64,000 nucleotides of DNA, taken from Phallusia mammillata. Taxonomy: Eukaryota. A program made the translations under genes and the position numbers. The notes beneath the pieces are model-generated. The model was given only the letters and a program-made list of their open reading frames with translations, made no database searches and was not told the origin of the DNA. The stretch spans positions 4,278,001 to 4,342,000 of the forward strand of contig OZ281495.1 in assembly GCA_965637545.1 (NCBI GenBank), given 5' to 3'. Below, piece after piece: positions 19,770 to 63,978 of the stretch; position 1 is the first letter of the stretch, and each line of letters opens with the position of its first letter.

Positions 19770-22754
19770 GAGTTTGGTACATGTCGGGCGGATCTGATAA
19801 AATGTTATGATGACAATCGAGGCTTTTTGGGCCGGGGAACGTTTTCCTGTGTCCGACTCGGACGAATGGACGACAAGGATGTTGCTTTGAAAATTTTCGA
19901 TCTAAAGCCACAAGAAGGGATATTTGTTAACTCAGGATACAGGTAACGTAATCACTTTTACCTTACAATGACGGTAAATTTTCACTCATAGAATATAGTT
20001 CCAATACATAGTCACTCATAGAATATAGTTCCAATAAATATCACGCAGCAGCGAGTGCAGGCCGACCGGGCAAATATGTCACTATTCCGTCACTATTTAT
20101 TTTTAGAGTAAAGGAGGAATTCAAATTGCTCGACAAGATCCATCACGACAACATAATAACAACTTTCGGCTTTACACGATGGGATCAATTCCGGATGGCG
20201 ATTGTCACCGAATATTTGCCCTGCGGTGACCTTGAAGGGTTATTGTTTCACCCCAGCAACGAAAATAGTGACGTCAGCTTTCCTTTGCGTCTGCGATTGA
20301 TTTATGACGTCGCAAAAGGTGTAGAGCACTTGCACAATCTTCCTGGAGGAGGTTACGTGGTTCATGGCGACCTTAAGTGTGGCAACATTTTGTTGACAGA
20401 AAATCTTGGTTGCAAAATTCCTGATTTCGGCAGCGCGTTTCTGGTGCAACGTGACGATGAAACAGAAGGTAATGATGGCCTTGTTCCCTTTACGATTCTA
20501 TACGCAGCACCTGAGCTTCTATGTGATGCAGACCTGCCCAGTAAGAAAACCGATGTTTACAGCGTTGGGATAATCATCCAGGCCGTAATTTTTCGCTTTT
20601 CGCCGTATACGCATGTTCTTGATTATGTATCCAGCGATGAGAGGAACGTTAAGATAAAAGATGCGATTTTGCGCGGAAAAGCACCAATTCCTGATGAACA
20701 TCAAACGTTTGTTCAAACAGAAGCTAATCGAAAGGGGTACAAACAATTGGTTACTAATATTGTAGCAGAGGCAAACAACTGTTGCAATTACTCGCCGGAG
20801 CACCGCCCACAGATCCCTGGTGTCCGTAAAAAAATCGAACCTCTAGTGGAGAAATATTCTCCAAAAAGAAAGGAGATCCAAACCATCGTCGGGTTGCTGA
20901 AAGCCGGCCATCACTTCGCTCAAGATAAAACCAAACTCGTTGCGCTTCCTAGATTTTCTTTCGAAAAAGAAGACTTAGACGGTAAACTATTTACTAAATT
21001 TACATAAGTTATTTGCCACTTTCGGAAAATTACAGCGTTCTAATGATTTTCTACGATTTTTTTCTACAGGAATAAGCATACAATCTTCTTGACAGTTTTC
21101 CTTTTATTGAAGGTGCAACGGATATTTTTATTTCTACATTTAGTGTTTTTTTCTGATTTCCTGGCGTTTAAAGGCATAAATGTTTTTCTTCAAGCCAGTT
21201 TTAGTTTTCTGGCAGCCGATATTTTGATCTGTGATGGAACTTTATTTAATATAGATTCGTGGAAATTGATTCGATGTAAATTAATGAAGTTTTTGTGCAA
21301 ATGTCAATATTTGCTCAAACTGATTTCCATGTGATGTATTCACAAATACAATCAATTTTTATTAAATTGTGTTTTAGATTGAAGTTCTAGCAAACAACAC
21401 AGTGACAACATCGGGAAACAATTTTCCAAACAGACAAAGGAAAACAATAAGAACAAGGGTGATAAAATTAGAACACAAGACAAGCAGGTGAAAGATCAAG
21501 CAAACAAACCATCCAGTTCACAAAGTTTGTCACCAGGTAAAAGTAAAAGAACAAAAGTTTAAAAAATAAATATTAACAAACGATCGCGATGGATTTTAAT
21601 TAAAATTGCAGTTTGTGAGTTTTCCAAACACAATTTTACGATGTTAATATATACGTAATACACAAGTTGCGATCGGTCTGGAGTTGACACACGTGTTTAA
21701 ATTTGAACTTGGTTACACATTTAGATAAGATTCCTGGCAAGGAACGAAAACGAAGTATGGATGGAAAATTGGTAACACAAGCAGCGGGGAACGCCATACG
21801 CAGAAAAAATGCAAAACAAAGCGAAACAGATAAAGCATACAAAGTTTTTCCTTCACAAAGCATTTTATCAGGTCGGTGATAAAAAAATAAACACCAACTG
21901 AGCCCTGAAACATAGGTAACTCTGACATGTTTTGGGGTTGAAATAATAGTAGGCAAAAACTTGAACGTTATGCGAAATTAAAGATCGCACTTCGCAAGTA
22001 GTTTACTATTTACATGATGACATGATTAATTCGTGTAATAAATACAATTCTGAAAATTCAGACAAAAAAGTGCATTCAGTAGCAGACAACCTGGAGGGAC
22101 AGAAACCAAATACAACATATAGCCAACAGATGAAAAGGCACGAAAAGGATTCTTCTTTCCAAACACGGCAATCAGCAGGCATGTAAAAACAAGCGTACAT
22201 AAAGTTGCAAAAAATATCGTATCGGGTTTTAATAAGTATTCCACTTCATCACATTTTTTATTTTTTACGTTTTTGTTGCTTTGAAATCTAATTATGAGTA
22301 TGTTTTAAATCAACCGTTTCTAAGTTACATTTAATTTAATCTTTTACATACTTAATTTTTAATTTTTTGTAATTTTAGAAGTTAAATTCATTTTATTAAG
22401 CAACGGAAAACAAAACAACTTGCACTTTGGCTGCAAGAAACTACAAAAACATGTTAAATACAGTGTGTTAAGCGTACACACTAGTTATTGCTATAAAGTT
22501 GGTTAATAATCGCCATTGTTTTTGTGATCCTTTTTGGTGTTGTTCTGGAGAGGGTGTCTAACTATACTTTGCAACCACAGGGCGAAGAAATGATCGCTGT
22601 CCTGAGGTTTGGTTGTTCGTGGTATGTAAACACATTCTTTACTTTAAACTGATTTAATATTAAACATTTATGTCTTCGTAAACAGTTTGCACTTGTACTA
22701 ATTCTATTGTGGATACCCAATCAGCAATTTTTCTACCAGAACCGTCGCCACTAG
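19770..22754 (+). CDS. K1: RIPK-like non-RD TKL kinase with predicted C-terminal TM anchor
   Basis: Exon 19770-19942 (LGRGTFSCV, VALK); exon 20107-20981 (HGDLKCGN, IPDFG, APE, KTDVYSVG). Phase-1 linker exons 21378-21536 (in-frame TGA at 21380), 21725-21871, 22062-22178 (GC donor). TM exons 22581-22621 + 22686-22754: CPEVWLFV|FALVLILLWIPNQQFFYQNRRH*. The start exon is not resolved. Confidence 0.85.
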
Positions 22755-23132
22755 TGCCGCTGTCGTGTGGACTTCTGCATGCATGATTTTGTTATCCGGT
22801 TTTAATGTAGATTTAAATGTAGTTTAGTTTGTCTATTTTCGTGTATATTGGTTAATGCGCTTTTAGCGTGTGTATAAAGTTTTGTTTTGTACATGTTTGT
22901 GCCCTTTTATCATTGAGGTATATACATGTAAATAATTAAGCAACGTTTAAACATGTTTTGTAAAATCTGAATTACACGGGTTTGTTGTGAACGAAAATCA
23001 AAATCACCTAATAAACAGATTTACTTAACTTTTCACATAACAGGACGAACCGAAATTAGTTTTATTTAATCACAAGTTATCTGCAAATCGTTTAACTCTA
23101 AAGTTTTAGTGCAATATTTGCAACGCCTGCGC

Positions 23133-23196: not shown

Positions 23197-23559
23197 CATA
23201 AAATTGTTGAAATTGCTCAAGGCTGAAGCATACTTCCATATGACAACAAATAAATGTCCTACAATGATACAGCGCTCAATTCCTGAAAGAGTACACAAGG
23301 TGTGCTTTGAAAAAGGGTGGTTGTTGGCAACTGCACTTCTTCATCTGTTACAAGCTACCTGGTCCTATTTGATTGCAGTTGTTAAGTTGCCTTGGTGTTA
23401 AGTTTGACTTAAACATTTATAGATACAAGGCAGTTAGGCACAATGTGAATTGTTAGCACTGGTTTCACGTTGAAAATGTTTATCGCATAGTCATTGGAAA
23501 TTAAATCGGTATAAATTAAGGCTCAAACTTTGGTTAATTTCATTGACTGAAGGTCCAAA

Positions 23560-25030
23560 TTTCCTGTTGGAAGGTTAGTGACAAATATATTACTACAAAC
23601 CGCTATACAAATACATCGCCGGATTTTAGTGAAAACATTTAAGCTTAGCTCAATAGTGCTTGTTAGTAGATTGATTAGAGTTAATTCAACGGTATTGGAA
23701 TTGACGTAACTGGAAAAGTACGCAAAATATTTATTCTAAAGTTAAACATATAATGGATTTCGCATTCCACATGAATTCCACTCACAATAGGCCGTACACT
23801 GCACTTCGTTTCTCGGCCATAAAAGCATTCGGCTCACCATCATAGCGGGTTTTGACAACAAACTGTAAAAACGTATGTTTGAAAATGGCCGTAAGCTCCA
23901 TTTCGGTAAACATTTAAACTATACATTTTACCGTTATGGCAGTAGAATGGGTTGACTTGATTGCAGCATAATCACACACTTTTAGTTGCATACACTTAGG
24001 CTAGGATTTATAACTATACAATAGTAACACACAACAATAAGAAGCCTAAAGTGTCACGCAGTTATGAACGTTTTTACTTGCGCGGAACAACATATTTTTT
24101 TACAATATTTACGATATATTGTTTTAATGTTAACCCCACTTTGTGTTGTCTTTCCACCTATTTCACGTTAAGGAGAATAAAAACAAATTACTTTGTAATT
24201 ACAACGCCTGAAGAATGGCCGATCGTGGTTTGGTTAATCATTGTAAGTTAACATGATATGCATGTTAAACTGATTTATTCTTATTGACAAAATAACCGTA
24301 TCAAATGTTTACAGTTTGCCTTTATATTGATTGTAATATGGATCCCAAGCCAGCTGTAATTCAGGATTCAGATGAATTAGCATGGGCATTTACTACATTG
24401 CACTTTACCGTGTATAGAGTCTTATGTATGTGAATTCTGTTTCATTTGGTCAGCAAAACCATCGGGTTCAACTACTGGTTTATGCAGCCGGCTATATAAC
24501 GCCATCAGGTCCATGCGGTAGGTTCCGATCCCACGGCAGAATATACCCAGTAAACCCCAAGCATCACTTAAATCAGTCGTTCTCAACTCGTTTCACCAGT
24601 TCAATTGACAGAATATCGTGGACCAGTCCATTGTTCCGTAAAGATATAAAGAAAACATCCACTACAAGCATATTGGCTTGAAATATAAGCTTATTTCTTC
24701 ACTACAGAATTTGGAGGAGTGATTTCAAAACAACTAACAGCTATCAATAAATAGTCATTAACTTGGATAGGCTTTTTTCGAACTTAATATTCAAAAAATT
24801 ACATGCAACTATTTCCGTTTTTATCGTCAGATAAGTTGTAATTTACTTCCTGTGTATCACCCAAAAAGTCATCATGGACCACCAATTGATAACCACTGAC
24901 TTAAAAAGAAGAATACTTGGCTCGATAACGCATGTTTTTTTCATTGTCCTTGCCGTTTTACAAAACTGTTCAATATAGATATGTCTGAGAAAGTGCTAAT
25001 GCTAATATACAAACGTGACTTGACTTGTTC
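23560..25030 (+). pseudogene. Orphan kinase-gene 3' fragment A (kinase-exon donor remnant plus TM exons); duplicate of 37010-38340
   Basis: Begins with ...ctgttggaag|gttagtgacaaa (kinase exon end). TM exons 24205-24242 and 24315-24359 encode PEEWPIVVWLII|FAFILIVIWIPSQL*, but the first acceptor reads AA instead of AG. High DNA similarity to the region after K4. Confidence 0.75.
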
Positions 25031-26061
25031 GTGTGAATTTTAATTATTGTTGCTGTGATTGTTTCTGTACATTTTATTGCCTTGTTTCGCTTTTCCGATA
25101 TAACCTAGACCTCTATCGTTTCTTTTCGTAAAATCGTTTGCATTAGAAACCTGCCGCTGTTTTTAAACAAGCTGATATTCTCCTATTTATCATACTCAGT
25201 CCGGTTATCCTATATGCGTTTTTACCGTGATTCCAATTCTCCAACGTGTTAATTGTAAACTAATTCATAAAGGTGCAGCTGGTGCAATCTTTTACAATTG
25301 TACCCTATGTTTGTTTCAAGTTGGTGTGTTTTTATCCGTGGGTTTTTCACCAATGTTTCCTACATCTGTCTCTTTGGCGCAATGTTATTCATAACCGACA
25401 TTAGCGAAAGCAATTACGACTTTTGCATTCTATTGGCATTTGCCGTTTCGTTTTGTTTGTAGCTACAATATCGTGTTATTATTGTGTTTGTTATAATTAT
25501 CAAAAACAACGTGATTTGACATGCTTTGAGGTGTAGTGAAATCAAGGAAAAGTTAAAGTAACTTATATGCATCAATAGTCTGTTCAATAAGGGAGACAAA
25601 TTTAGCTTACGAGGTCCTATCTGTGCAGTCGTTTAAAAACTTTTTAAACTTTAAAATTTTTCGGTTAAACACCAATTACATGAGGTTTCTTAAATCGACG
25701 ATTTTTTTTGTTCCTATGCATATTAAAGCTCAAGAATGCTCGAAAGTTGAACATCAATGCTTGTAAAATCGTAATCCTAAACTTACAAAAGCAGTCCGTT
25801 TTACTGATTGTAAAAATAACATCAAAAGTAGCTGTTCCATTGATCATCACCGTTGTGCGAATTTTGTTACACGAAACGGGAACCAGTTGTAAAACGATCT
25901 TCGAAACAGGAACTATTTTATATTATCAGAACCGAAGCGTCACAGATCTTTGTGTCTAACCTATCAGTAAAACTATTTAACGAGAACAGCAATAGTAACC
26001 CTAGTTGCTTTTTTTAGATTATTTCCTTTTTCCACAACTGCAAAGTTTTATTGTTTTTACA

Positions 26062-26609: not shown

Positions 26610-27445
26610 GAGATTGTAGCTTGCGACCCAAGTAAGATCCGTTGTTATACGGGGAAAAGGTGGTTTAATTGGCCGTGGTAGATTTTCTTGTGTGCGACTC
26701 AGATGAACGGAAAGAATGTTGCACTCAAGTATTTTACTCTTACATATCAAAAACATGTGACGGGTAAGTTTTACATTTTAACCAATCAATGACAGGTTAA
26801 GTAAGAAGACATAAGTAGTTGCTGTTAAAAAATGACTCTTGTCTTCGATTCAATAAACCGAAAATATGTTTGTTTTCGGAATTCGAAAGCAGTTTGAGCT
26901 GCTTAAGCTGGTACACCATGAGAACGTACTGAGGACACCCGAGCTTACTGAATGGCGTGACAACATGACTATTGTGACGGAATGCTTGCTTTACGGTGAC
27001 CTAGCGACGTTATGGTTTAGAGAACGTGAAAGCGATCGACTATGCCACGTCACTCTTTCATGGCGACTGCAGTCGATTTATGACGTAACAAAAGGGGTTC
27101 CGCACTAGCACAACACTTTTGAAGGTGGTCACGTGGTTCATGGCGACCGCGACAACGTTTTGCTGACCTTCAATCTTAGGTGTAAAATCGCAGATTTCGG
27201 GTGTTCGTTTTTGATGAAGAGTGACGAGGACGTACAGGGAGCAACCAAAATGGCCCTTATCACCGCCTATACCGCCCCAGAGCTTTTTGAAAGATAAAGT
27301 GTGCCCAGCCATGAAAATTGCCGACGTCTATAGCGTTGGAATGATCAATCCCTTATTTGTTTGCTCTCGACCATTTGCACTTGATGACATTAATGAAACC
27401 AGTCATCAAGATGATGAAACTGAAAAGAAAGCGGTATTAAGGTAG
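26610..27445 (+). pseudogene. K2: kinase pseudogene of the same family
   Basis: Exon-1 remnant 26610-26763 (IGRGRFSCVRL, NVALK) with frameshifts. Kinase exon has a stop at 27106-27108, a damaged catalytic loop (HGDR-DNV), retained KIADFG and TAPE, and further stops/frameshifts. Confidence 0.9.
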
Positions 27446-28539
27446 GTGTCCAGAGCTGTAAGTCTTGGAATAAAACTGGCTTGATTTTGGCCCAACGTAA
27501 TGTTTGGCCGCAATGTGTCGTAAATTTTCTTAGTTAATCTAACTTTCGGGTTTAATTGGGGATTTATCATGCACTCTTTTTTGGAGAACTTGCTAAATCG
27601 CTACTTTGTGGAAACATTCAGTTACAAATTTAAGCTATACATTTCAATACGCATTAGTACAAAGTCATTTTAATTTTTTTTGACAGAAATAATCTTAGGC
27701 ATTCTGAACGTTTGACCAAAAGCAAGTGTTATCTTCGTACATAAATTGTTCCAGCCTCTTCCTAAAACACTCAAGTGAACAAAAATAAGTGTAACGTCAA
27801 GTAAATGAAAATGAAACACAACTACAAATGGAAATGCCCACGCAAAGTTGTCCATTGTTAGCACGTACGGTGGTTGGTTTCCATTGTGTGTCGGTTTTAT
27901 TCCACAAAACAGGTAGCAGATAAAATAACAACCATCGAAACAGGAACCAGAAGTCCCATACACCAAAGCATATACTGGACATAAATTAGTATGCAAGTTT
28001 TCGGATGTCGAAATAGTCGTGTTTAAGTTAGGATGTGTTTATTGTTGCTTGGCACCGTTAACCTAGGGAAAATATGCCAATGAAAGGGATATGTTTGGCG
28101 TTGTGGGTCAACGATTTTGAAAATATTGGAATATTATGAGCGTTAATAGTTTGTAATCGTCTGCCATTTCAATGGATCTCACAGGCAAAACAATATTTTG
28201 AATGACTGTTACATTCTTAAACATTTTCCCTGCAGAAAAAGCTACAATCAGCCCACGGGGCAGTCTGTAACGCAGAAAAATGTTCCGTTGTGTTTAGTAA
28301 AATTTGTTGAACTGGCATAAAAGCAAGTACTATCACTGGAACGACTTAACGATCTCAGTAAATAACCTGCTATCAAAAGTGTTAAAATTCTAAGCAAGAA
28401 CTATAAACCTTATTAACTATACAGGTCTCGCTTATGTAACTTACTGAAAAGGATAATAAAAAGTGGAAAATCAGAAACAGCTGTTAAACACCAAATCTCG
28501 ATGGTTTGTTTGTAGGAGTTTGTAATCTAGGGACCAAAT

Positions 28540-30500
28540 ATGATTAGTTGTTATGCTGGTAAACGAGGTTTATTAGGCAAAGGAGCGTTTGGTGCTGTTC
28601 GACTCGGACGGAGGAACAACCAAGACGTTGCACTGAAATGTTATCACACGAAAACACGAAAACAAGGAGTATTGATGACACCAGATAAGTACGTGGGCGG
28701 GTGCCTATAAGTTTAAGTAGTTAAACATGGACTGGTTGCTAAAAAAGTCACTTTTTACGTTAACTTAGAGGATTCTTTTTTCTTTTTTGTGTTGTGTACA
28801 AACACCAATTTAATTTTCAGAATTTCAAATGAGTATGAGTTGCTTTCCATGGCAAATCACGAAAATGTTGTAAAAACATTTGGGTTAACGCAATGGAATA
28901 ACGACAACTGGATGGCCATTGTGACGGAATACTTGCCCAACGGTGACCTTGGAAAGTTATTGTACAAGACAAGTGATGGCAAAAGCAACCAAAAATGCGA
29001 CATCAGCTTTCCATTGAGTCTGCGTTTGATTTATGACGTCACAAAGGGGGTAGAGTACTTACACAATCATCTTGAAGGAGGTCACGTGGTTCACGGCGAC
29101 CTAAAGTGCGATAACATTTTGCTGACAAAAAATCTTTTTTGTAAAATTGCTGACTTTGGACTCGCGTTTTTTGTAAAAAATGGCGATGAAGAAAAACAAG
29201 GTAAGCAAGCGATATTTGAAATGACCTTTGCTGCGCCAGAAATTCTTAAGAATATGGCGCTTCCAAGCAAAAAAACTGATGTCTACAGTGTAGGAACAAT
29301 TATGCAGACCGTACTCTTTCGTTCTCCTCCATTTTCATTTGTTTTGCATCGAGTTAACCCCGTCCAAAAAAGGGAGGCAGTTTTGAACCATTTTGCACCA
29401 TTTCCTATTGATCTGTGTATGTTTGTACGTGCAGAAGCTGCACAAAAGGGATGTGGAGGCTTAGTTGCAGAGATTGAAAAAGTGGCAAACAAATGCCGGA
29501 ACTACAATCCAGCTGATCGTCCGGAAATTGCTGATGTCCGTAAAATACTTTGCAAATTGTTAGATAAACATTCCCCTACAAGAGAGGAAATCCCCTCAAT
29601 CGAAAAATTGCTAAACACAGCCCCACTTTTCGAACGAGATGAAGCCATCCTCGTTCCGCTCACAAAGTTTTGTCCTGAAACTGGTGGTTTACTTCCAGAT
29701 CAAGACACTGATAAGCAGCAGCCACAAAGTGCAAAGAGTGAGAACAAAACCAATGAGGCGGGTGAAACGCAAGGGAAAAGTCAACCTCATCAGGCTAGAA
29801 CTTTCCAAACATCGTCAAAAGGTACGTGGCAAATATTTAGCAACAATTACATCTATAGGCTATACCGCATACCTTTACATAGCTAGTCCAAATCGGCTGC
29901 ATATTTTTTACAATTAGATCATAAAGAAACATGTACGAGCAACGTCACAGCTCATGCGATGCCAAACATCACACACAGGAGAATTACAAAGCAACAAATA
30001 AATGTCTTACCAGTCAGGGCTTCTCAGTTACACAGCTCCTCAGCCGGTTGGTATTGTCAAAGATTAAACAATAACAAAGTCACAAAAGGCTTTGGCTTAC
30101 AATTGAGATCAACAGGGAAGTCATTCCGATATTTAGTACATTGACACAATGTAGCAGCTTGATACTTTTAAACCGGTTACGATCCAAACAAATGTAAAAA
30201 TATGCTAAAACAGTGCTTTTTGACTGCATTTTGTTTCTTTAGTCGGTTTGTTTTAAGCAGCCAAACAGATTTTATAAAAAGAATACTTTTTTTCCCTTTT
30301 CCCAAGCAGAATTCATAGAACCAGAAAAGAAATGGACGTTTTGGAACCCGTCAACAGTTGTAGTCATCGGCACCATATTCGTCGTAAGTAACTGCATCAT
30401 TGGTCCAAAAATCAGGTATTTAGTGAATTTGTTCTCACCTATTTGTGTGCAGGTCGCTTATGTATTGACTATGATATGGATCCACAGTCAGTTGCGTTGA
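28540..30500 (+). CDS. K3: RIPK-like non-RD TKL kinase with predicted C-terminal TM anchor
   Basis: Exon 28516-28688 (ATG 28540; LGKGAFGAV, VALK); exon 28821-29821 (HGDLKCDN, IADFG, APE). TM exons 30310-30383 + 30453-30500: WNPSTVVVIGTIFV|VAYVLTMIWIHSQLR*. Confidence 0.9.
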
Positions 30501-32821: not shown

Positions 32822-33963
32822 TGATATTCCCCGTTGGAAGGTTAGTTACAATATATTACTACAAACAGCTGTACAAATACATATCCGCGATTTAGTTAAC
32901 ACATTTAAACTTAGTTCAATAGTGCATGTTAATAGATTTATTTGAGTTAAGTTAACTGCCTTTGTATTCACGTAACTGATAAAGTAGGTGCAGTATTTAT
33001 TCTAAAGTCGAACATATTATTTGTTACGCATGTTTGTTAAGTATCAGACCGTTTTTAGCTGTTTGTGAAGTATTAAATTTTGTTTAAGGTTTTCCACACA
33101 TACCGTTAAGTAACATATATTTCTACAATCAGATGACAAAGGTGACTTTCGACAAAGTACATCTGGGAGAAACGCACTCACACGCCGACCGAATACGAGG
33201 CAAACACAACTGCCTGATGTACTAAGAGAAAACGCTTCCGATCTACCAAGCTCGTCAGCAGCAGGTCGGTGATTAGGTTACAAGTCTAAAACAGGCACCA
33301 ATGTGACAGGACAAGCATTCTATTCAGTGGCAAACGCATTTACGTTTAACACAAAACATTCAGAACAGTTTTATAAATATACGATGCATGGCTTTCTATC
33401 CTGTTTCCATCTTAACAAACTGGAGTGCTGTGCGATGGATACACTAGCATCCAATACGGTCAATCTCTTGTCACCAGCTGCGCTGATAGAATTTTGTAGG
33501 TCCAACTAGTGTGCACTGTCTGCATATAGCCATGGAAGAGCTTGATACGTTAACATTTATAAAAGCATTACCCCAACCTCAAAAAGCATATTTTTTGATT
33601 TAACCCAAATATATTTTACTGTTTACTGAGCATGCATTTTCTTGCTTTTTATTTGGCCGCTTTATTTCGAATATTCAAATCCCTTTATTTTTTATTTAAA
33701 TTTCCGTGTGACTAACCATCTATACTTTCCATTTGCAGGACGAAACTTGATTTACTGCTGCCCTGTGATGTTTTTATTCGTGGTATGTAAGCAGATTCTT
33801 GATTTAATACTAGATATTTTAACCGTATTCATCTGATTTAATACTAGATATTTTAACCGTATTCATTTGTTTACAGTTTGAACTTATTGTGGAATCTTTT
33901 TTTCGTTTCCGTTCGTTTACTATCGGTTCGGACGCTACTAGGAAGCCGTCGCTTTTGAGTTGA
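32822..33963 (+). pseudogene. Orphan kinase-gene 3' fragment B (K5-like tail without a kinase domain)
   Basis: Starts at gatattccccgttggaag|gttag (kinase exon end); linker exon 33133-33264; TM exon 33739-33782 (GRNLIYCCPVMFLFV); last exon 33877-33963 frameshifted by an 11-nt deletion relative to K5. Similar to 42585-43965. Confidence 0.8.
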
Positions 33964-35456
33964 ATTGAAATTACGGTATGATTTGAATGTAAATATAGTC
34001 CAGTTTGTTGAATTTAGTTTGCAGTTGGTATACGTGCTATTGTGTTTATAAATTTTAAAAGTTTTGCATGTGTATTATGTTTTATATGTTTAGGTCATTT
34101 TATCGTGTTTATTACGATAAATCAATAACCGATGTAATAGTGTGACGAATTTTTAGCACTTATACCTTTCGTTAATTATGCTCAAGTCGATTCCTTTATT
34201 TTCTCACACCTACGTGCACTAATAATCGTTTCGTGTGCAAAGATGTGTACTGTGTATCGTCACCAACGACATTCCGTGTTTGTTACGTTAAGATAAACAA
34301 ATAACCGATCTAATATTTTCAGTAAAATGTATTTTGTCATAATTACCCTGAATATTTGTGAGAGATAAACAGAGTAACACAATAGTTTTTCGAAAAACAT
34401 GTAAAATTACAGCCATGCGGTGTTTAAACTGTTTAAACTTTGACTTGTTTATTTGTTACACTTTGTTTGCTAATCATATACACAGTAAACTTCCGGGTGG
34501 TTGCTTGTTTGCCTCTTATCTTGCATAAGGGCTTTGTAGGCCTAATAAAAACATATAGTCTTTTTCATGCTCTGTCCAGCAAAGACGTTTTTCGCGCGCT
34601 TGCTCCTACCCGCGCTTGGGCAAAAACAAACAAATTTACTGTACTTAGTAAAGTTGCAGGTTGGGCTGGGTTCGGGCCGGGATAGGCTTTCAGTTTTAAC
34701 AAATGGCCTGACGTTATTTGGTAGGGAACATTTCTGTCTCTATTTAATCTTTGTAAATCTAACTTTGGATCCTAATTCGGGTTTTATTTTAACGAAGTTT
34801 CGGGTTCAACTACAATTTTAGGCCAGCTTTACAACTCCGGCTTATAGAAACCTCCACGTGGCGTAATGGAAACTCTTAAACATTGCGTTTGGCCTCAATA
34901 AAAGCCATGTTTGCGCGAGATCGGATACATTTCAAATATGCCTCCTATTAACTCCAACTACATTATACATCATAACTCAGCCATATTTGTTTTGAGTTCG
35001 TTGATTTGATAAATGCACTAAAATGTTCGTATAATTTACTATCACAAAAGCACGTAAGGGTTATTTTATCTGATTTAACATGAAGCGGCAGCTTAGATTA
35101 GACTGCTTGTAAAAATTGAAACTGCTAGGAATAAAACCAATTAAAAGTTGCCAATTGTTCGTATTGACGATTGTTTGTTTTTCAGTGCGTGACTTTTGTT
35201 ACACACCAAGAGGGAACTAGTTGTGAAACGACCTTTGAACAGGAACCACTTTCTGATACTCTGGCAGAAGCGTCAGACGAGTATAAATGAAACTTATCTG
35301 TTCAATACTTGTCGATTATTTGAAGATTTTATTCACGAAGATGCACACAAGTTGATGTTGTTCCTACATGAAAGTTAACGTGGTGTTGCGACGACTGACA
35401 TAAAGTTGGTTTCCTTCAAAACTTTGTGATCGCATGCGAATCAAAGTTGTTGAAGA

Positions 35457-37670
35457 ATGTGGTTTATATTTCAAAAGCTGTACAACTGGTGGAAATCAAT
35501 AGACACTGGGGTAATTATGAGCTGTAGTTTAATTCGAAGGAAACTAAATCTACTTGAAACTAATCAAAATAATGTAATTTATAAAAGATTGAAATTGGTG
35601 TCGAATTTGCTAAAAACAAACAAAATACTAACCCATAATATGAAAGCTTTCAAGTTTGCTTAGCTGTAGGCTAAACTTGAGAATTCCTTCATCAAGGGCA
35701 AAAAGCTTCAGCTTTCAGCGCAGACAAAACATTTCTTGTGAGCTTATGTGAGGTAAATTTAATTCACAAACTTTTCTACTTAGAAGTGTGGCACATGTGG
35801 ACCGGATAAGATCAGTTGTTATCTGGGTGAAAAAGGTTCCCTTGGCAAAGGCGCATTTGCCTGCGTTCGACTTGGACTGATGAACAACAATGATGTTGCG
35901 TTGAAGTGTTTCAACGTGAAATCAAAGCCACAAGGAATCCCACAGTCATCAGAAACGTAATGACTTACCTAAACCGAAGCGTATATGTAAATAAGTTACC
36001 ATAAAATTGCAAATGTAGAAGCCAGCCACTGAAGTTAAACACTGACTGACGCTTATATTGCTCTTTAAACTGATTTTATTTTTAGAATTTGGGAAGAGTT
36101 CGAATTACTTCGAACGGCAGATCACCAAAATGTCGTAAAAACATTCGAGTTGACGCAATGGGATCGAACGAACTGGATGGCCATTGTGACTGAATACTTG
36201 CCTTGTGGTGACCTTGCAACGTTATTGTACAACACAAGCGATGGCAAAAGCAATCAAAAATGTGACATCAGCTTTCCTTTGCGCCTGCAATTGATTTATG
36301 ACGTCACAAAGGGGGTGGAGTACTTGCACCGTTTTTCTGGTGGAAAGTACATCGCCCATGGTGACCTAAAATGTGACAACGTGTTGCTTACCGTCGATCT
36401 TAGATGTAAAATTGCTGATTTTGGTTCCACGTTTTTAGTGAACAGTAATGAGGGTCCGAAGTTAACTGGTGAACATCCAATGCAATTTGCCATCACGCCC
36501 CACTATGCGGCACCAGAGCTTCTCTCTGGCCAGTCTCTTTCGTGTAAGGCGACCGACGTTTACAGCGTGGGAATGATTATCCAGACGGTTCTATTTCGTT
36601 TTCCACCATTTTTACACATCATTGAAGGCGTATCCCAGAGCCAGGATTGTGAAAAGATTAAATCCGCGGTTTTAAGTAAAACAGCACCGGTCCCATTCGA
36701 TCTACGCTTATGCGTAGCTATGGGAGCCGAACAGAGCGGATGTATGAACTTATTTCTTGAAATTGAAAATGTTGCAAACAAATGTCGAAGTTACTCGCCA
36801 ATAATCCGACCCCACATTACTGAAATCTGCGAACGGTTTAGGGTTCTACTGGAACAGCATTCCCCTGCAATAGAGGAGATCGAATCCATAGCGGAATTGC
36901 TAAAAGGGGGCCACCACTTTTCTCGCAATAAAACCGAACTCGTTCCACTTACAAGGTTTTGTCCCGAAAATGGAGGATTGCTTTCAGGTCAAAGAAGTAA
37001 AGCTCCATATTCCCCGTTAAAAGGTTAGTGACAAAAATATTATTACAAACCGCTGTACAAATACATCGCCGGATTTTAGTGAAAACGCTTAAGCAATGGT
37101 TCTTGTTATTTGAGTGAGTTACGTCAACCGTGTTGCTATTGACGTAACTGGAAAAGTACGCAAAATATTTATTCTTTAGTTAAACATATAGTTGGCTACT
37201 CCGTTACTTTTTACGCATGCTTTATAAGTATTAGACTTTTCCGCTCACTATAGGCCGTACACTTCATTTCGTTTTTCGGCTATAAAATTCGGTTCACTAG
37301 AGTGGGTTTTAACAACAAAACTGTGAAAACGTATGTTTAAAAAGGGCCGTAAGCTCACTTCGGTAAACATTTGAACTACATTTTACTGTTTGGTGCTTTA
37401 TATGACAGTGGGCTACAATGGTTTGACTTGATTGCATCATAATCAGACACTTTTAGTTACATACATTTAGGCTAGGATTGTATAATAATAACAAACAACT
37501 TTGCAATTACAGCACCAGAAGAACGGCCGATCGGGGTTTGGTTAATCATTGTAAGTTAACATGATATGCATGTTAAACTGATTTATTATTATTACTAAAA
37601 TAACCGTATCAAATATTTACAGTTTGCCCTCATATTGATTGCAATATGGATCCCAAGCCAGCAGCTGTAA
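35457..37670 (+). CDS. K4: RIPK-like non-RD TKL kinase with predicted C-terminal TM anchor
   Basis: Probable first exon 35457-35510 (MWFIFQKLYNWWKSIDTG, phase 0); exon 35784-35956 (LGKGAFACV, VALK); exon 36086-37023 (HGDLKCDN, IADFG, APE). TM exons 37513-37550 + 37623-37670: APEERPIGVWLII|FALILIAIWIPSQQL*. Confidence 0.9.
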
Positions 37671-40439: not shown

Positions 40440-40584
40440 CGGATGAGACATGCCGTGCAGATCAAAAAAAAGATGACGTAGGTAAACGAGTTTTTTTGGA
40501 CTTTTGAGAATTTCCCTGTGTCCGACTCGAGTGGAAGGACGACAAGGATGTTGCTTAGCCAACAGGCAACAATTTTTAGTGCAC
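40440..40584 (+). pseudogene. Solo degenerate kinase exon-1 remnant (K1-like)
   Basis: 40511-40556 tttccctgtgtccgactcgagtggaaggacgacaaggatgttgctt closely matches K1 19843-19888; the frame is disrupted and no kinase exon 2 follows. Confidence 0.75.
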
Positions 40585-41026
40585 GTAAATGACATTTTGC
40601 GGACATAGACATACATAGCAAATTATTATCATTGTAGATACTATTCTCACACTACTGACGAAAAGCACATTTTAGACTGCTCGTAAAAATCGGAACTGCC
40701 TGGAATAAAACATAAATGCAAGGTGGCCCATTGTTCGAGTTGGCGTTTGTTTGTTTTTCAGTGTACGACTTCCGTTACACACCAAGAGGGAACTAATTGC
40801 GAAACGACCTTTGAACAGGAACCACTTTTTGATACTCGGGCACGGGCGTCAGACGAGTATAAATGAAACTTACCTGATTAATGCTTGTCAGGTGGTCAAA
40901 GATTTTATTTGAAGCACATTAATTAATGTTGTTCCTACATGAAAGTTAACGTTGGTGTTGCGACTACTACATAGATGGTTTTACTTCAAAATTTTGTGAT
41001 CGCATTCAGGTCAAAGTTGTTGAAGA

Positions 41027-48870: not shown

Positions 48871-49495
48871 AGCCCATGTGAGCAGTTTTTACATTTATTT
48901 CGCTTCACCGATTCTGTCTGGAAAACGAAACATTTCTTCCAGGTTGTTTTTTGTCACAGTACAAACGCATTTTGGAGCACCAAGCCGAAAGATTCAATGC
49001 ATCAAATTGTACTCTGTCCGGAATGCCAACGCAAACTTATTTATTATCCTCGCTAACCGTCGTTTGGTTTTTATTACACGGCCGCCGTCCATTGTAGTTA
49101 CAAAGCAGGTACTGAAACGATAACAATATCAAAACAGGAACAAGTCTTTCCCATTACAACACAAAGGTTTGTCATGTGGGATAAAAGATTTTTTCTGGTT
49201 GAAGTTAAGGTTGGTATATTTTACTCAGCATAGGTTTACGTATCTACACAATGGCAGATGAAAAACTACTTGAATAAGTGCAAACATAAAAACCTTATGT
49301 ATGGTTTAATAGTAAGAGGCATAGTTAGTTGATGAAGATTAAATGTGCTGAAAGTCAAATGATGCCACCACTCAAAGTAGCTGTTGTTCTGAAACTTTCC
49401 TAACTTAAACAGACAAACACATGTAGCAGAAGATTGAACGGTTTTTGAATTTTGAACCATAATTGCTGGATGAGAAACTGACAACACAATTTACA

Positions 49496-52400
49496 ATGGG
49501 GGTAAATATGTTTTGTTCGTGTAAACTATCAAAAACAAAGGTTATTCAAACGATCAAAAATCAGATTTAAATACAACTGATATAAAGAAAAAATAGCAAA
49601 GATATTGACAGATGTGGTAAATTTATGTTGTACCCTTACCACACATCATGAAAAAGTAACTTGGTAACTGTTAAATTTGCTGCAAAACATGTTGGATTTT
49701 AATAAAAAATAAAACCACAAACAACACCTAAAATATAAGAATTCAACCCGGAACAGAATATAATTTCTTATTTGGTTACTAAACTTTGGCTCCCCAACTT
49801 TATTGTGTAATAGGAGTTTAAAACATGCGAACCAGACAAGATCAGTTGTTATCTCGGTAAGGGCGGCTTGATTGGCTACGGCGGATTTTCCTCTGTATGG
49901 CTCGGAAGGATGGAAAACAAGGATGTTGCAGTAAAATGTATAAGTGTTATATCAGGACCCGAAGGAATTCTACTTACCAAAGAGCGGTACGTTGCTTATT
50001 ATAACTCAAAAAACAGTAACATGGTGTAAAACATAGTGAACAAGGCCTAGCGAAGGCGTTAAAACGATTTGGCTGGTCACCAAGCATTCCCACATATGGC
50101 GGGGCAATAGGCGAACCGATTTGTATATTAGTATGCCGTGATCGTTGGTCTTCGGGTACGCTTCAGGGTTGATTCGAGTAATGATTTTTTTCATTGTATA
50201 AACGCAAAAACTATTGCATTATACAACCATACCACGCGTCACCGAATTTGGGCACATCGCGCAAGTTAATACAAGTCGGTTAAACATTGACTGGTGTTTA
50301 AACTGCCCGTTAAATTGATTTTAATTTTAGAGTTTTGAAAGAGTTCGAATTGCTTTGGAAGGCAGATCACGAAAACATCGTAAAAGCATTCAAACTGACG
50401 CAATGGGATAGAAACAACTGGATGGCCATAGTGACGGAATACTTGCCCTGCGGTGACCTTGAGAAGTTATTGTTTGACCCAAGCTACAGAAAAACGCGAA
50501 TCAGCTTTCCTTTGCGTCTGCGATTGATTTATCACGTCACAAAAGGGGTGGGGTACTTACACAATCTTCCTAAAAGCGGTCACGTGGTTCATGGTGACCT
50601 AAAGTGCAACAACATTTTGCTGACGGTCAATCTTACGTGCAAAATTGCAGACTTCGGCAGCGCGTTTTTGGTAAACAGTGATGACGAAGAAGGGCATAAA
50701 GGCACGCATGTTCCGTTTACAATAACTGATGCTGCTCCGGAGCTTCTCACTGAAAAGGTGCTTCCAAGCACATTGACTGACGTCTACAGCGTAGGTTTAA
50801 TTGTGGAGGCCGTACTGTTTCGTTCTTCTCCATTTTCACGTGTACTATAAAGTCCACCCAGCACCAATCATGTCGAATGGTTAAAGGCGGCGGTGTTAAA
50901 TGAAACACCATTTCCTAAAGAGCTATGCACACTGGTACACAACGAAGCAAACGTAATGGGATACACAGATTTAGTTGTTGAGATCGAAGCCGAGGCGAAA
51001 AAATGTCGGAATCAAATGCCGAATGACCGTCCACAGATTACTCATGTCCGTGAAAAATTTTGCTCTTTACTGGAGAAATATTCCCCAAAGAGACAGGACA
51101 TACAGGCGGTCAGTAAGATTCTGAAAGCTGGACCCAAATCTGCCCGAGATGAAACCGAGTTAGTTCCGCTATCTCGGTTTTGTCCCGCAAACATGGTTGT
51201 GTTTCCAAATCGACACATCGATATTCAGCAGTCACAGATTACAAGAAGAGGAAAACAAGCTGGGGGACGAAAGAAGCAATCGAAGAAACAAGTTAAAAAA
51301 GCGATATTACAAAGATTGTCATTGGGTACGTGACAAACCTTGAGCGTGCCATGCTAATATTTAAAACATGTCAAATATCGTTCGAATATCCTTACTTCAT
51401 TGGCTCACTTTATACGTCGAGTAAATAAATACAAGGCTATTTATTACAGAATATGACGAATGCGTATTGCCGTTTTTATGAGATTTTAATTACATTTTGC
51501 AAAATTCAGTGTGCGTTGATGATAATCTGGATCAAAAACAAAGTGCAACAGGAAAAGATTTGGAAGCTGCACCAAGAAAAAACAGACAACGCGCAGCAGA
51601 AAAGAGTGACGCTTATACCCACGAAATTGAAATTCATACCAATAAATCTTCTACTTCCCCAAAATTACGAGCAGGTCAGTAATAAAATTTCAACATTCGC
51701 ACCAAATCACCCGGTAGTGCAGATTTGTCAGTTTAAAAATGCGATAGAAGTAAATTTGGTACCTTGTTTAATTCTTGCACGTAGCACGTTGGTTTTGTTG
51801 TTAAAAAGTTTCATCCAAATTGCATTTACTTTACATTGCGTTCAAGTTGTCCTTAAATATTGGCCTGATCAAGTAAATAATTCCAAGCTTTTTTCGACAG
51901 AAAATGACGAACTTCCACTCAAAGAGTTGTTGCAATCTGACCGTCGCCCTGTTACAGGTCACAAAGAGGTTGTTTCACTTAATAAGCCCACTTTTGAAGG
52001 TAACTCTTTCACACAATAATTCTGTGGTGATAATCTTGAGCAAAACTAAAGTGAGGCAGCAGGAAGAAATTGACAGCAACACTTACTTCACTTTGCCATT
52101 GAGTTTGTCTTTAATGTTGACCCGATTAAATCGTCCAGCAAATAACTCTGGGATTGTTTTCTTCAGAGAATGTAAAGCGCTTCAGTGTTGAGGCATCGCA
52201 GCCCGAACCTCACCCTGTTGAAAAAGACAAAGAAGTCATTCTGTGGGACCAACAAAGCCCTGAAGGTAAATATATTCTAAGCTTCTTTTCTATCACTTTG
52301 ACAAGTATTAATTTCACATATTTTTGCAATTTTGCCTACCTCACTGACACTTCAACTGATTTAGATAAGTGATAAAAATTCACCTGTGACACTAAAATGT

Positions 52401-59544: not shown

Positions 59545-61717
59545 ATTGTGTTTGGCAGTTTTCTTCAGTACAAAGTGAAGTTGTGCAATTTGTATGGACG
59601 GGTCGGGCTGGGCCAAAACCAGATTACTTGGTATCAAGCATGCTGTTTTCAATGCTCAGTGCTTGGGCGAGTAGTTGCACAAACTGCATAGAGTATTACT
59701 TATTCATATCCATGCCCCACATATGAAACCAGTGTTCGAAAGCTAATAAAAAACAACTGTTTTAATAAATGTGCTAGTTGATGGGACACTCAACCTTCTG
59801 GGGTCTGTAAACTTAGTACTTGATGGTGACGAAGGGATCTTGGAAAGCTACAAAACTAGCATGGATTTTGAAATGTTTGTGATGACGCAATGCACTGAGC
59901 ATTAGCATGAGATACTGGGTAAGCAAACAGAACATTTGCAGTTTTAGCAACTCCCTAGCAATTTGTACTTTATTTTTATTCCTCTTCAATCTTTACTGAC
60001 GTTTTACCTTCTTACAAATCTACTCCACTGTCCTCTCGCAATCCAGTATTATACCGATAAAACATTCTTCCTTATTTTAAAAAATGTGTAGCTGTGTTGT
60101 GCCTCTTTTGCGGCTCTCTTGTTTACTTGTCATATTTGATGTGTTTGACATTTGTTTACCCAATCTCATGGCACTAAATTTTAATAGACTTCATTATTAT
60201 AAAACAATATCTTTTAGGTGAGTCCAGTTTACAGTCAGGGAGTACAAAGCATAAATGCAGAAAGGACAAGACGTAAAGAAAGAAGTACAATTTTGTGGAA
60301 TTACAGTTTAACAATTTTTTTAAGGGTTTAAAAATGTGCAAACAATCTGACAATTTCACTTCAGAATTTTGTATTCGGTAGTTCAGTTTTGTAAACCTTT
60401 ATCAGACATTGCAGACCTGCATTTCAGTGCAGCTGGCGATAGGTCGTATTAACCAGTGTAGACAGTTATTTAAAACCCATATGTGACTGAACATAGGAAG
60501 TGGTTCAAGTATTATTGTTTCCCTTATTAAGTTTAATACGATCTGAAGCAAAACTACAGAAATTGTAACGTGACAAATTCGGGGTAAGTTATTGTTGTAA
60601 AAATATACATCTGAGAGAAATAATTTATAACCACTGTTAAAAAACGACTTGAAAAGGTGTCTTTAATACACACAGAATAAAACATCACCACTAAACGTAA
60701 ATTTACCGTTAGGGGATTTACCATATGGTAGTTTTTACTGTTTTGTGACTTAAAAATCGTAGGGTGTTTCAAATCGTACGTAATATGTTTGAGTACAAAT
60801 TGACTCTGGCGAAACCGACCAACACAATATAATTCCAACCTGTTAGTGAAAATGTCAAAAGTTACTGACATAAATGCCAACAATACGATGTCTATTATTC
60901 GCACAGTAGGTAATATGGTTTTCATGACGCCAGCATTGTTATTGACAAAACAGGAACCAAATGTAAAATGATCTCAATACAGGAACTAGTCTATGCCTTT
61001 AGATTGTCAGCGTTTGTAATTAATATTTAAAGCCAGCAAGTAAAGTCTTCTTGCCAGACAAACGAGTAAACTTAAGATGGGTTTGTTTTTATTTCGCTTG
61101 ACTGGCATTCAATGCTAGCCTTGCGTGTTTTTCAAACTCAGTCACTGCCAGCATTGTATGTTATTCCATCTTACTGCTGTTTCAGACCCAGCAGTTGGTA
61201 TGTCGAGTTTTTTTAGTAAAAGTTGGAATAGCAAATCAATCGCTGGATCAGGGTTGAACGTACAGAAGTATTTAACCGGCAGTGTAGTAGTAGTTAGATC
61301 ATTACAAGGTGTTATATGGCGGGAATAAAGTAAATGCAAATGCAAGGCTAAGTTACCAGGGGCATATCTAAACTATTGTTAGCAGATTTCGGTTTCAAAC
61401 CCCAACTTTTGAGAACAGAAACCCGATGAGGCGCAAATAATATTAATTTAGTACAATTGATTGAAAAGAGCGCCGACGTTTAGCCAACCTTAATGTACAG
61501 CTACGACTGAGATATTAAAGGAAGGGACACTCTAACCTTGTTGGTTACTACAAAACGGTTATTCATTTGAATTTTTTTGATTTGACTGTTACATACGACT
61601 AGTAAGTTACCTTTAAATATTTTCACGTTAACAGGCATCACATATTCTTAGACATTTGAAATGGTTATGCATTTTACAGGATGAGAAAATCATAATGAAC
61701 AGACAACAGAGTTAAAC

Positions 61718-63978
61718 ATGGAGGTAAATATAAAACAAAAACACCGTTATTTTTTATAGCTCTGCTTTGTTTGTTGGTCTGCTAACACAAGATAACAAAT
61801 ATTAACTCAACTCGTTGCAAATCAATTGAATTAATAATAGTTTGGTGCTTTACCCCGGTTGAATTAATTTGTACTTAAAACATATCTAGAACATCACAGG
61901 TCCATTACAGAAGTCATGAACGTAAGGTCACTACTTCACATAGCCAACGGTATAAAATCCGTTCAACTTTCATAAATTTAAATATGAAAGATGAAACATA
62001 ATTCTTGCCATCAGTTGCTAAACGGTGGTAAATGGTAAAGAGTGCTTAATGTCAAAAATACCTAGTTATAGACCTATTCGAGCTGTGTTATATTACATTG
62101 TATTTTAAATTGGCTACTAAACTAAACATATTACTTTTGCGTGCAGGAGTTTGAGAGCTGCCAACCTCATAATATATGTTGTTATGCCGGCAATCGAGGT
62201 TTACTCGGCAAAGGAAAATTTGGTTTTGTCCGACTCGGGCAAATGAACGGCAAAGATGTTGCACTGAAATGTTTTAACCTGAAATCAAGACCATTAGGAG
62301 TTTTACTAACACCAGAAAAGTACGTGGGTTTGTTTTGTAATTTAACCCGTAGTTTGAAATGTGGGCAGAACACGGAAGTACGTCAAACCGCAGATAAACT
62401 GTGGCTAGAGTGTGCTGTGCTGACAATAAATACTACGCCATGCGAAATACAATGACCAAATAGACCTACTATGTGGCAGCCTGCAATGAAACGTCCCACC
62501 GAAGGCTTGTACCTCATTAGTGATGAAGTATGCCACTTTTTAGGTCATAATAAGGAATTGCATTATTCATTAGTTTATAGTTATATGAACCATGGTATGA
62601 CTTATTGGTCAATAGGATCATGTCTATAACCCCCATGCGTCCTAGTGTACAATTGCTATGTATAACTAAGCAGCATTGCCTTAATTTTCAGAATTTCAAA
62701 TGAGTTCGAGTTGCTTTCCATGACACACCACGAAAACGTTGTAAAAACATTCGGGTTAACGCAATGGAATGAAAACAATTGGATGGCGATTGTGACGGAA
62801 TATTTGCCCTGCGGTGATCTTGCAAGGATTTTGTATGGCACAAGAGATGATAAAAGCAAAAATTATGACATCAGCTTTCCTTTGCAAGTACGACTAATTT
62901 ATGACGTTACCAAGGGGGTGGAGCATTTACACAATCTTTCGGGAGGAGGTCACGTGGTTCACGCAGACTTGTTATGTAACAACATTTTACTGACCGACAA
63001 TCTTACATGTAAAATTGCTGATTTCGGCAGCGCATGTTATTTCAGTGATGATAAGCAAGAAAACGGAAAGAAAGTCCCATTTCCAGTCAGTTTCTCTGCC
63101 CCTGAGCTTGTCAGTGACATGGCATTCCCGAGCAAGCAGACAGACGTCCACAGCGTAGGTACGGTTATCCAGGCTGTGCTCTACCGGTTTCGGCCATTTT
63201 CACATATTTTGTATGGCCCTCCAGTTAGTCGCGAGGAAGCTAATGCCGTAGTTTTAAACAATGCACCATTTCCTGATGATGAACGTGCGCTTATCCGTAG
63301 TAAAGCCAAACAACAGGGATACACGGATTTGTTTACTACGATTGAAGCAGAGGGAAATAGATGTCGAAGTCAAAGGCCAAATGACCGCCCACAGATTACT
63401 GATGTCCGTGAAAAATTTTGCTGTCTACTTAAAAAACACTACCCTACAGGGGACGAAATCCAAACCATTGTGAAGTTGGTAAATTTTCAAGGAACTTCAG
63501 ATGAAACTAAACTCGCTCCACTTTCAAAATTTTGTCCGGAAGATGGAGGTTTACTTCCAAATCGAAATGGTAAGCAACAACCACAAATTAAGAGAAAAGG
63601 AACGAAAAGCAATGGAGTGTGTAGGAAGCGAGTAGCAAGTCATACCAACGAGTCTATATCTTCTAAAACATCGTCGACAGGTAGGTGTCAAACAGTCAGC
63701 AATAAATCAGGGGCCTAATCTTTGACAATATCGTCCATATTTTAATAAGATTGTCCCCATTGACTAAGAAAGTCACTACAAACTGTGTGGTTTCATTGAA
63801 TTTAAAGTTAGTTTCATGCCTCTTTTCGAAATACATGACACACAAAAAAGTATAAGCAGCATGGAACTTTTGTCAGGTCAGGAGGAGATAAATGACAGAC
63901 ACAGAAGAATTACAAGGCAAAACCAACAAAGGAAACAACCAGCAGACAACACATCTACCTTACATACCTTGTCAGCAG
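61718..63978 (+). CDS. K7: RIPK-like kinase with variant catalytic loop; 3' end runs off the window
   Basis: Probable start ATG GAG| at 61718-61723; exon 62147-62319 (LGKGKFGFV, VALK); exon 62692-63680 (HADLLCNN, IADFG, SAPE); linker exon 63877-63978. Confidence 0.85.

Follow-up and report, generated by a model that had tools for sequence, protein, structure and literature searches.

Kinases of the TKL/RIPK-like group drive innate immune and cell-death signalling, and in the literature non-RD kinases such as IRAK1 and the plant Pelle/RLK kinases correlate with innate immunity. C-terminally tail-anchored kinases are rare, with VRK2A as the documented example, and we know of none from the TKL/RIPK-like group. 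RIPK2 has a C-terminal helix; unlike the kinases presented here, however, RIPK1-4 have, as far as we are aware, no C-terminal transmembrane (TM) helix. VRK2A is found on endoplasmic reticulum and mitochondrial membranes and on the nuclear envelope (PMC3734818, PMC9062753, PMC5555652). The layout of this isoform, a cytosolic kinase domain, a linker and one C-terminal TM helix, is also predicted for the kinases of a tandem array in the window, the whole stretch of 64,000 nucleotides of Phallusia mammillata DNA that we analysed. VRK2 belongs, however, to the VRK/CK1 group and not to the TKL kinases, comes as one gene instead of a diversifying tandem array, and has a tail without sequence similarity to the array tails. 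Judged by its sequence, the array would combine known elements, a TKL kinase and a tail anchor in the style of VRK2A. We regard it as probable, though well short of certain, that it is a birth-and-death tandem array of lineage-specific, non-RD TKL-type Ser/Thr kinases with a predicted C-terminal tail anchor.

The window contains seven kinase copies (K1 to K7), all on the plus strand, and both kinase exons were recovered in each by tblastn (Table 1). The large exons match the Pfam families Pkinase and PK_Tyr_Ser-Thr (PF00069/PF07714) with E-values of 1e-24 to 1e-33. As the initial annotation had it, the preceding exon with the G-loop and VAxK motif is 173 nt long and degenerate in K2. The length is exact in K1, K3, K4, K5, K6 and K7, where an AG acceptor opens the exon and a GT donor in phase 2 closes it; in K2 the exon is frameshifted. 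K1, K3, K4, K5 and K6 retain the motifs GxGxFxxV, VAxK, HGDLKxxN, DFG and APE, while the Arg before the catalytic Asp is absent (HGD in K1 and K3-K6, HAD in K7), which makes these kinases non-RD. Each of the six full copies has a phase-1 G/GT donor at the 3' end of its catalytic exon. No stop interrupts the spliced models of K1, K4 and K5, which run to 385-455 codons and have canonical AG/GT at all junctions; those of K3 and K6 have one stop each and are otherwise open. The AlphaFold model of K4 (pLDDT 84) adopts a kinase fold, and helices are predicted beyond the kinase core. The exons, their phases and conservation and the catalytic motifs are read directly from the DNA, and the in silico results support a tandem, fast-evolving family of non-RD (HGD) kinases.

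What follows the kinase domain? The four split-helix peptides first quoted for K1, K3, K4 and K5 are correct, and the intron inside the helix is indeed phase 0, with lengths of 64, 69, 72 and 71 nt; the junctions 37023>37513>37623 and 29821>30310>30453 proved canonical and in frame when checked on the sequence. A homologous tail, absent from the initial annotation, is also present in K6, with a 66-nt intron, so that five copies are tailed. In every spliced model hydrophobicity peaks at the C-terminus (Kyte-Doolittle 2.4-2.9 over 18 residues), and in K1, K3, K4, K5 and K6 the predicted helix ends 4-12 residues before the stop. The hydrophobic stretch of the tailed models spans 15-24 residues, and no second hydrophobic segment occurs in the known part of the spliced models; if the predicted splicing is real, this part would have a single TM domain, placed within the last 30-40 residues or so as in tail-anchored proteins. 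In K1 the hydrophobic core is short, with about 15-16 residues, and the helices of K5 and K6 include a Lys or Arg. Despite flanks that no longer align and a catalytic-exon dS of ~1, each of the five copies has retained the phase-1 donor, the acceptor of the TM exons, a phase-0 intron (64-72 nt) within the helix and a stop shortly after the helix, which argues for conservation of the tail beyond chance. The TM exons have many synonymous differences, with dN < dS. In silico, the reading frame of the intact copies appears to continue into one TM helix at the C-terminus.

Table 1. Features of the kinase array, in window coordinates; a slash marks an exon boundary.
Feature	Position	Strand	Remarks
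K1 upstream block, putative core promoter	17259..17412	+	nhmmer E 1e-33
K1 G-loop/VAxK exon	19770..19942	+	173 nt, phase 0 to 2
K1 catalytic exon	20107..20981	+	HGDLKCGN, PDFG, APE; phase-1 donor G/GT
K1 TM exon 1	22581..22621	+	encodes …GRRNDRCPEVWLFV
K1 TM exon 2	22686..22754	+	encodes FALVLILLWIPNQQFFYQNRRH, stop
Orphan copy of K4 3' region	23554..25871	+	degenerate TM exons from ~24206 and ~24315; acceptor AG changed to AA
K2 partial upstream block	25853..25944	+	nhmmer E 1e-14
K2 pseudogene	26610..27315	+	G-loop exon frameshifted; catalytic exon cut off after ~150 codons; no tail
K3 upstream block	27826..27987	+	nhmmer
K3 G-loop exon	28516..28688	+	codon 5 is TAG, in-frame ATG after it (MISCYAGKRGLLGKGAFG)
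K3 catalytic exon and polar linker	28821..29821	+	Pfam, spliced model
K3 TM exon pair	30310-30383, 30453-30500	+	…TVVVIGTIFV / VAYVLTMIWIHSQLR, stop
Orphan copy of K5 3' region	32829..34541	+	linker-exon homologue; degenerate TM exons from ~33739 and ~33877
K4 upstream block	35133..35286	+	has TATAAA; nhmmer
K4 G-loop exon	35784..35956	+	173 nt
K4 catalytic exon	36086..37023	+	Pfam, spliced model, AlphaFold pLDDT 84
K4 TM exon pair	37513-37550, 37623-37670	+	APEERPIGVWLII / FALILIAIWIPSQQL, stop
Relic K1-like G-loop exon fragment	40430..40556	+	contains stop codons
K5 upstream block	40707..40862	+	nhmmer
K5 G-loop exon	41299..41471	+	173 nt
K5 catalytic exon	41648..42600	+	Pfam, spliced model
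K5 candidate linker exon	42896..43024	+	phase 1 to 1, basic and polar, optional for frame; homologue in K5-like orphan
K5 TM exon pair	43383-43426, 43498-43563	+	GRNLICCCPVIFLFV / FKLVLILLWNLFPHVFYRFGR, stop
K6 upstream block	49015..49178	+	nhmmer
K6 G-loop exon (49814-49986) and catalytic exon (50331-51325)	49814..51325	+	in-frame TAA 50848-50850
K6 TM exon pair	53884-53924, 53991-54038	+	…STVRWSVLIRITL / VAFVLVLIWILGQRD, stop
K7 upstream block	60865..61022	+	nhmmer
K7 G-loop exon (62147-62319) and catalytic exon (62692-63680)	62147..63680	+	HADLLCNN instead of HGDLKxxN: catalytic-loop Lys replaced
K7 candidate linker exon	63877..63978	+	phase 1 to 1; any TM tail would lie outside the window

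An in-frame stop lies 3-63 nt past each catalytic-exon donor, and the read-through stops at 21007, 29886, 37028 and 42605 are where the initial annotation placed them. Stops so close after the donor make a soluble isoform possible, and the products could be soluble kinases of ~330-400 aa that end there, with the TM exon pairs as relics or a minor isoform. We consider this unlikely, though it deserves to be taken seriously. It would fit the AATAAA/ATTAAA hexamers between kinase exon and tail in K1, K3 and K6; K4 and K5, however, lack any polyadenylation hexamer in this interval. It would also fit the kinase-less, degenerate orphan tails at 23554-25871 and 32829-34541, which indicate that tails are separable from kinases. 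Yet these orphans are visibly decayed, by a lost acceptor and a deletion, as expected of unused tails, whereas the tails of the kinase copies have kept splice sites, frame, hydrophobicity and stop across a dS of ~1, and the donor has kept its phase in all six full copies. In line with soluble products, the junctions had no RNA support in the runs examined, whose reads we inspected over 32701-38700: two runs with reads at the locus show even coverage across introns and intergenic DNA, as DNA reads would, and two RNA-labelled runs from the same species gave no contig on K4 and covered only the high-copy repeat 38448-38525. Read joints such as 35828>36068 were rejected as splicing, being off the splice sites and resembling paralogue or repeat artefacts.

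Expression was likewise not seen in these runs, as it would not be if the array were largely a gene graveyard of unexpressed or decaying duplicates, their architecture inherited from one ancestral gene. Parts of the locus match this description: judging by their reading frames, the truncated K2 and the prematurely stopped K6 are decaying copies, K3, with its own premature stop, is probably another, and K7, whose catalytic-loop Lys is gone, may be a pseudokinase or otherwise catalytically impaired; a relic G-loop fragment and the two orphan tails can be added. For the array as a whole we nevertheless find it very unlikely, as K1, K4 and K5 are open throughout with all catalytic motifs, the upstream block described below is kept in every copy, and dN/dS of the catalytic exons is 0.26-0.49 over all pairs instead of ~1, even in the young K4/K5 pair (0.49 at dS 0.36), which points to purifying selection.

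This upstream block is a conserved non-coding element of ~155 nt with a TATA-like box, one upstream of each of the seven copies, as found with nhmmer and a model built from a six-copy alignment. Its distance to the G-loop exon is 0.43-2.4 kb, and just 0.43-0.8 kb in K3-K6; the extra spacing in K1 is explained by a MITE insertion. One block per copy, close to the G-loop exon, suggests that each copy has its own promoter and leaves little space for large N-terminal domains. The G-loop exons all start at an acceptor, with an in-frame ATG ahead of the G-loop only in K3, so that all models lack the true N-terminus. Six-frame self-comparison revealed no conserved 5' coding exon, and the start exon was not located: enumeration of phase-0 ATG…GT first exons gave many candidates, not conserved between copies (for example MWFIFQKLYNWWKSIDTG in K4/K5 and MTN in K1). 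Trans-splicing of an SL onto the G-loop acceptor as the sole 5' end was rejected, since the first ATG would be out of frame in K1 and K4-K7, with an in-frame start for K3 only. Two small blocks common to the upstream regions of K1 and K7 are a MITE-like element with inverted repeats and not exons, and a short ORF in the upstream block (MPTQS…) was dismissed as coding, as the copies differ in it by indels of lengths not divisible by three and it is missing in K4, K5 and K7. Other ORFs between the copies had no Pfam matches, and Rfam gave no match within the window. Larger membrane proteins with these kinases as their cytoplasmic portion, in which upstream exons would add a signal peptide, ectodomain or TM domain in place of tail anchoring, may be suggested by G-loop exons that begin at an acceptor without a start codon and by nearby Ig-type receptor genes. 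We give this reading hardly any credence, as in K3-K6 the interval after the promoter-like block is short and free of conserved coding blocks, and the adjoining receptor gene lies on the opposite strand.

To which kinases is the array related? The initial label of RIPK-like is weakly supported: the family profile ranks RIPK2 first, but single-sequence search places NEK2 and MARK first. Against solved structures the profile scored 85.8 bits for RIPK2, 76.9 for CTR1 and 68 for RIPK1, a small lead of RIPK2 over CTR1, plant RLKs, TAK1 and JAK; identity is only ~23%. RIPK2 is also the top Foldseek match, tied with CTR1, JAK and TAK1 (E-values of RIPK2, CTR1, TYK2 and TAK1 within a factor of ~5). 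We tentatively place the kinases as TKL-like and non-RD, with RIPK2 as the best solved match by a small margin. They differ from the RIPK family in having no CARD, death domain, RHIM or ankyrin repeat in the large exons and spliced models, as initially annotated; translation of the large exons, which include the linkers of K3 and K7, gave no further Pfam domain, and the RHIM core [IV]Q[IVLC]G is absent from all spliced models. Like IRAK1 and the plant Pelle/RLK kinases, the array replaces HRD, here by HGD, and the plant RLKs SOBIR1, LysM-RLK, SYMRK and BIK1 are among the better matches of its profile; the best 60 PDB matches, however, include no IRAK chain, and a death domain is lacking. The nearest public proteins among 1.84 billion representatives are uncharacterised kinases of Clavelina lepadiformis and Ciona intestinalis with at most 38% identity, including CAK8691737.1, XP_076823432.1, CAK8691419.1 and XP_018669718.1. 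These relatives are lineage-expanded like the array, but their kinase is partnered with a GBP GTPase, Ras/Roc, SH3/SH2 or long N-terminal regions, and none of the nearest annotated ones has a C-terminal TM domain. An exhaustive profile search found no match above 38.6% identity and a word-indexed search with K3 none above 34%; the ESM Atlas gave generic kinase clusters only, and collections of 5.8 billion and 15 billion public proteins contained no transcript-derived member of the family.

In the tail-anchored array that we favour, each unit would be its own transcription unit, opening with the TATA-like block, followed by a short start exon, the G-loop/VAxK exon and the large catalytic exon, which would also code for a two-helix C-terminal extension. 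Zero or more symmetric phase-1 linker exons would then lead to the final two small exons, encoding one TM helix with 4-12 residues and a stop behind it. If mRNAs use these junctions, the products of K1, K4 and K5 would have ~385-455 aa plus a few N-terminal residues. Insertion would presumably be post-translational, with the catalytic domain facing the cytosol and the tail holding the kinase on an intracellular membrane as the putative target, so that substrates would be phosphorylated at the surface of that membrane. A bolder version, in which a diversifying family of RIPK2-like kinases arose in sea squirts and is wired to an organelle membrane, localisation replaces the CARD/DD/RHIM adaptors of vertebrates, and the kinases act in innate immunity or allorecognition jointly with the Ig-type receptors encoded nearby, strikes us as quite unlikely; with such an organelle anchor, an array kinase would resemble a MAVS-type platform fused with its kinase.

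Should the tails not be spliced in, the array would merely be another lineage-specific kinase expansion. If the predicted transcripts are real, however, it would represent an alternative way to localise TKL/RIPK-like kinases, and a case of shuffling, duplication and loss of phase-1 linker exons and a two-exon anchor cassette in a fast-evolving family. Since no other invertebrates are as closely related to vertebrates as tunicates, the array may then bear on RIPK-type signalling as it was before the vertebrate adaptor domains became fixed.

Within the window, whose G+C content of 32-41% is that of AT-rich eukaryotic DNA, tblastn searches with one catalytic and one G-loop exon as queries locate both kinase exons in seven tandem plus-strand copies, K1 to K7. 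The large catalytic exons match Pfam Pkinase/PK_Tyr_Ser-Thr with E-values of 1e-24 to 1e-33. In six copies the G-loop exon, which carries the G-loop and VAxK, measures exactly 173 nt; it is entered in phase 0 from a conserved AG acceptor and left in phase 2 at a GT donor. The catalytic exon follows a conserved acceptor (TTTTCAG/G or TTTTTAG/A, slash marking the splice site) and ends in a phase 1 G/GT donor in all six full copies. The 'LIFRI' that opens the tblastn matches is not coding, but represents the polypyrimidine tract and acceptor. Adjoining the array on the minus strand (13192-14810) are exons of an Ig-superfamily receptor-like gene; several of them are Ig-like, and a TM segment reads VIIAASVVGCIVLVSLVIGAIPFCCRR.

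Kinase copies of the array, with conserved upstream block, G-loop exon and spliced model; models begin at the G-loop exon and end at the stop codon
Copy	Strand	Upstream block	G-loop exon, first tblastn match	True exon start	Spliced model	Reading frame
K1	+	17259-17412	19770		385 aa	open
K2	+	25853-25944	26610			
K3	+	27826-27987	28516		431 aa	one stop, otherwise open
K4	+	35133-35286	35793	35784	398 aa	open
K5	+	40707-40862	41308	41299	411 aa, or 454 aa including linker exon 42896-43024	open
K6	+	49015-49178	49814		418 aa	one stop, otherwise open
K7	+	60865-61022	62141	62147		

What follows the kinase exons? The initial annotation had proposed splicing to a hydrophobic helix split by a short intron, and both its junctions and its quoted peptides proved right. 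Two small exons lie 3' of K1, K3, K4 and K5, the first entered in phase 1 and left in phase 0, the second beginning in phase 0 and reaching a stop after 15-22 codons; jointly they encode one hydrophobic stretch, interrupted by an intron whose length is 64, 69, 72 or 71 nt. When all six frames were scanned by BLOSUM score for the second-exon motif, these four tails and two degenerate orphans came back, together with a fifth good tail that had been missed, behind K6 (53884-53924 and 53991-54038, with a 66-nt intron). AG and GT are present at all junctions of the spliced models. Among the 18-mers of each model, the C-terminal one has the highest hydrophobicity (Kyte-Doolittle 2.4-2.9) and stops 4-12 residues short of the stop codon. 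A tail-anchor architecture of the predicted proteins is well supported in silico. In the K5 tail (43383-43426) a CCC run, LICCCPV, is found at the cytosolic edge of the helix, where K1 has a single Cys; these residues are possible palmitoylation sites. Low-complexity, basic, polar sequence is encoded by three linker exons (42896-43024, 63877-63978 and 33091-33257), all of which run from phase 1 to phase 1 and can thus be skipped, duplicated or swapped with the frame intact.

The copies differ in their state of preservation. K1, K4 and K5 keep every catalytic motif. In K2 the G-loop exon is frameshifted and the catalytic exon breaks off after about 150 codons. Codon 5 of the K3 G-loop exon is a TAG, with an in-frame ATG after it, and K6 carries a TAA at 50848. 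In K7 the catalytic loop reads HADLLCNN and has lost its lysine; any tail of this copy would come after the linker exon at 63877-63978, past the window end. A relic G-loop fragment persists at 40430-40556. Judged from these broken and intact copies, the array is a birth-and-death family, in which about three genes are clearly intact. As synonymous divergence between the catalytic exons is about 1 (0.36 for the young pair K4/K5), the copies are old, and dN/dS of these exons amounts to 0.26-0.49. Aligned as DNA across five copies, the tail regions match at the splice signals and exons only and not in the flanks; the TM codons show many synonymous differences, with dN < dS wherever dS is computable. 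The orphan tails, which lack a kinase (23554-25871 and 32829-34541), arose by duplication of the 3' regions of K4 and K5 and are damaged, either by loss of the acceptor (AG to AA) or by deletion. Such decay would be the expected fate of unused tails, in contrast to the five tails behind kinases.

With the exception of K3, the G-loop exons offer no in-frame ATG ahead of the G-loop, so that the start must come from an exon further upstream. A search for a conserved coding block 5' of the kinase exons found none, and candidate start exons differ between copies, none being conserved. A conserved non-coding block of about 155 nt, however, occurs exactly once 5' of each of the seven copies. Its indels among copies are not multiples of three, and a TATA-like box (TATAAA in K4 and K5) comes after it. 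The block precedes the G-loop exon by 0.43-0.8 kb in K3-K6 and by 2.4 kb in K1, where about 1.1 kb is a MITE-like insertion. We infer that it is the promoter region of each individual unit, which argues for the copies being separate genes and for a short missing N-terminal exon. Across K4 and the six other copies, the block contains a forkhead-like run, TGTTTGTTTTT, and the motif AACAGGAAC with an ETS-like GGAA core, both 5' of the TATA-like box; they are candidate regulatory inputs common to the whole array. The MITE-like element, whose terminal inverted repeats read caggggtgcacaacctgcggccg … cggccg…aaggttgtgcacccctg, has one copy inside the putative K1 first intron (18115-19190) and another between K6 and K7 (54695-55020).

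In two sequencing runs containing the locus, coverage is even over introns and intergenic DNA, and the runs thus behave as DNA. In two runs from the same species that are labelled as RNA, contigs within a 6-kb stretch fell only on a very high-copy repeat (38448-38525). In the DNA-like runs the word depth of this repeat is about 1e5, and next to it lies a truncated upstream-block copy (38393-38456).

The array kinases are TKL-like and non-RD (HGD), yet their earlier designation as 'RIPK-like' is weakly supported. In its favor, a five-copy profile searched against solved structures ranks RIPK2 first (85.8 bits), ahead of CTR1 (76.9), plant receptor-like kinases, TNNI3K, RIPK1 (68) and TAK1, and RIPK2 also leads the Foldseek matches of the K4 catalytic exon AlphaFold model (pLDDT 84). 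However, the Foldseek lead is effectively a tie with CTR1, TYK2/JAK2, ACVR1 and TAK1, and a single-sequence search of solved structures returns NEK2, MARK, RIPK3 and RIPK2 with similar E-values. RIPK2 is the nearest solved relative; RIPK membership is unproven. In the K4 model (exon 36086-37023), the kinase core is followed by two confident helices (residues ~244-278), encoded by a family-specific segment, LLEKHSPTREEI…KLL, after which comes a conserved LVPLxxFCPExGGLL motif.

A word-indexed search returned no relatives above 34% identity, and an exhaustive profile search, run over 1.84 billion representatives, retrieved many kinases, the closest at ≤38.6% identity. The nearest named relatives, proteins of Clavelina lepadiformis and Ciona intestinalis, join the kinase domain to a GBP GTPase, Ras/Roc, SH3/SH2 or long N-terminal regions, and none of these ascidian proteins has a C-terminal TMD. 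In layout, the predicted array proteins resemble VRK2A, whose C-terminal TM domain holds the kinase on ER, mitochondrial and nuclear-envelope membranes (PMC3734818, PMC9062753, PMC5555652), but VRK2 comes from a kinase group that is unrelated. RIPK2, conversely, is nearest by sequence, but the RIPK interaction modules are absent from the array kinases: the translated large exons match no non-kinase Pfam family and the spliced models contain no RHIM core. An immune role of the array kinases is speculation. As read from the genomic sequence, the array fits best as a diversifying tandem family in which a TKL-type kinase is coupled to a tail-anchor cassette, which would be a new combination.
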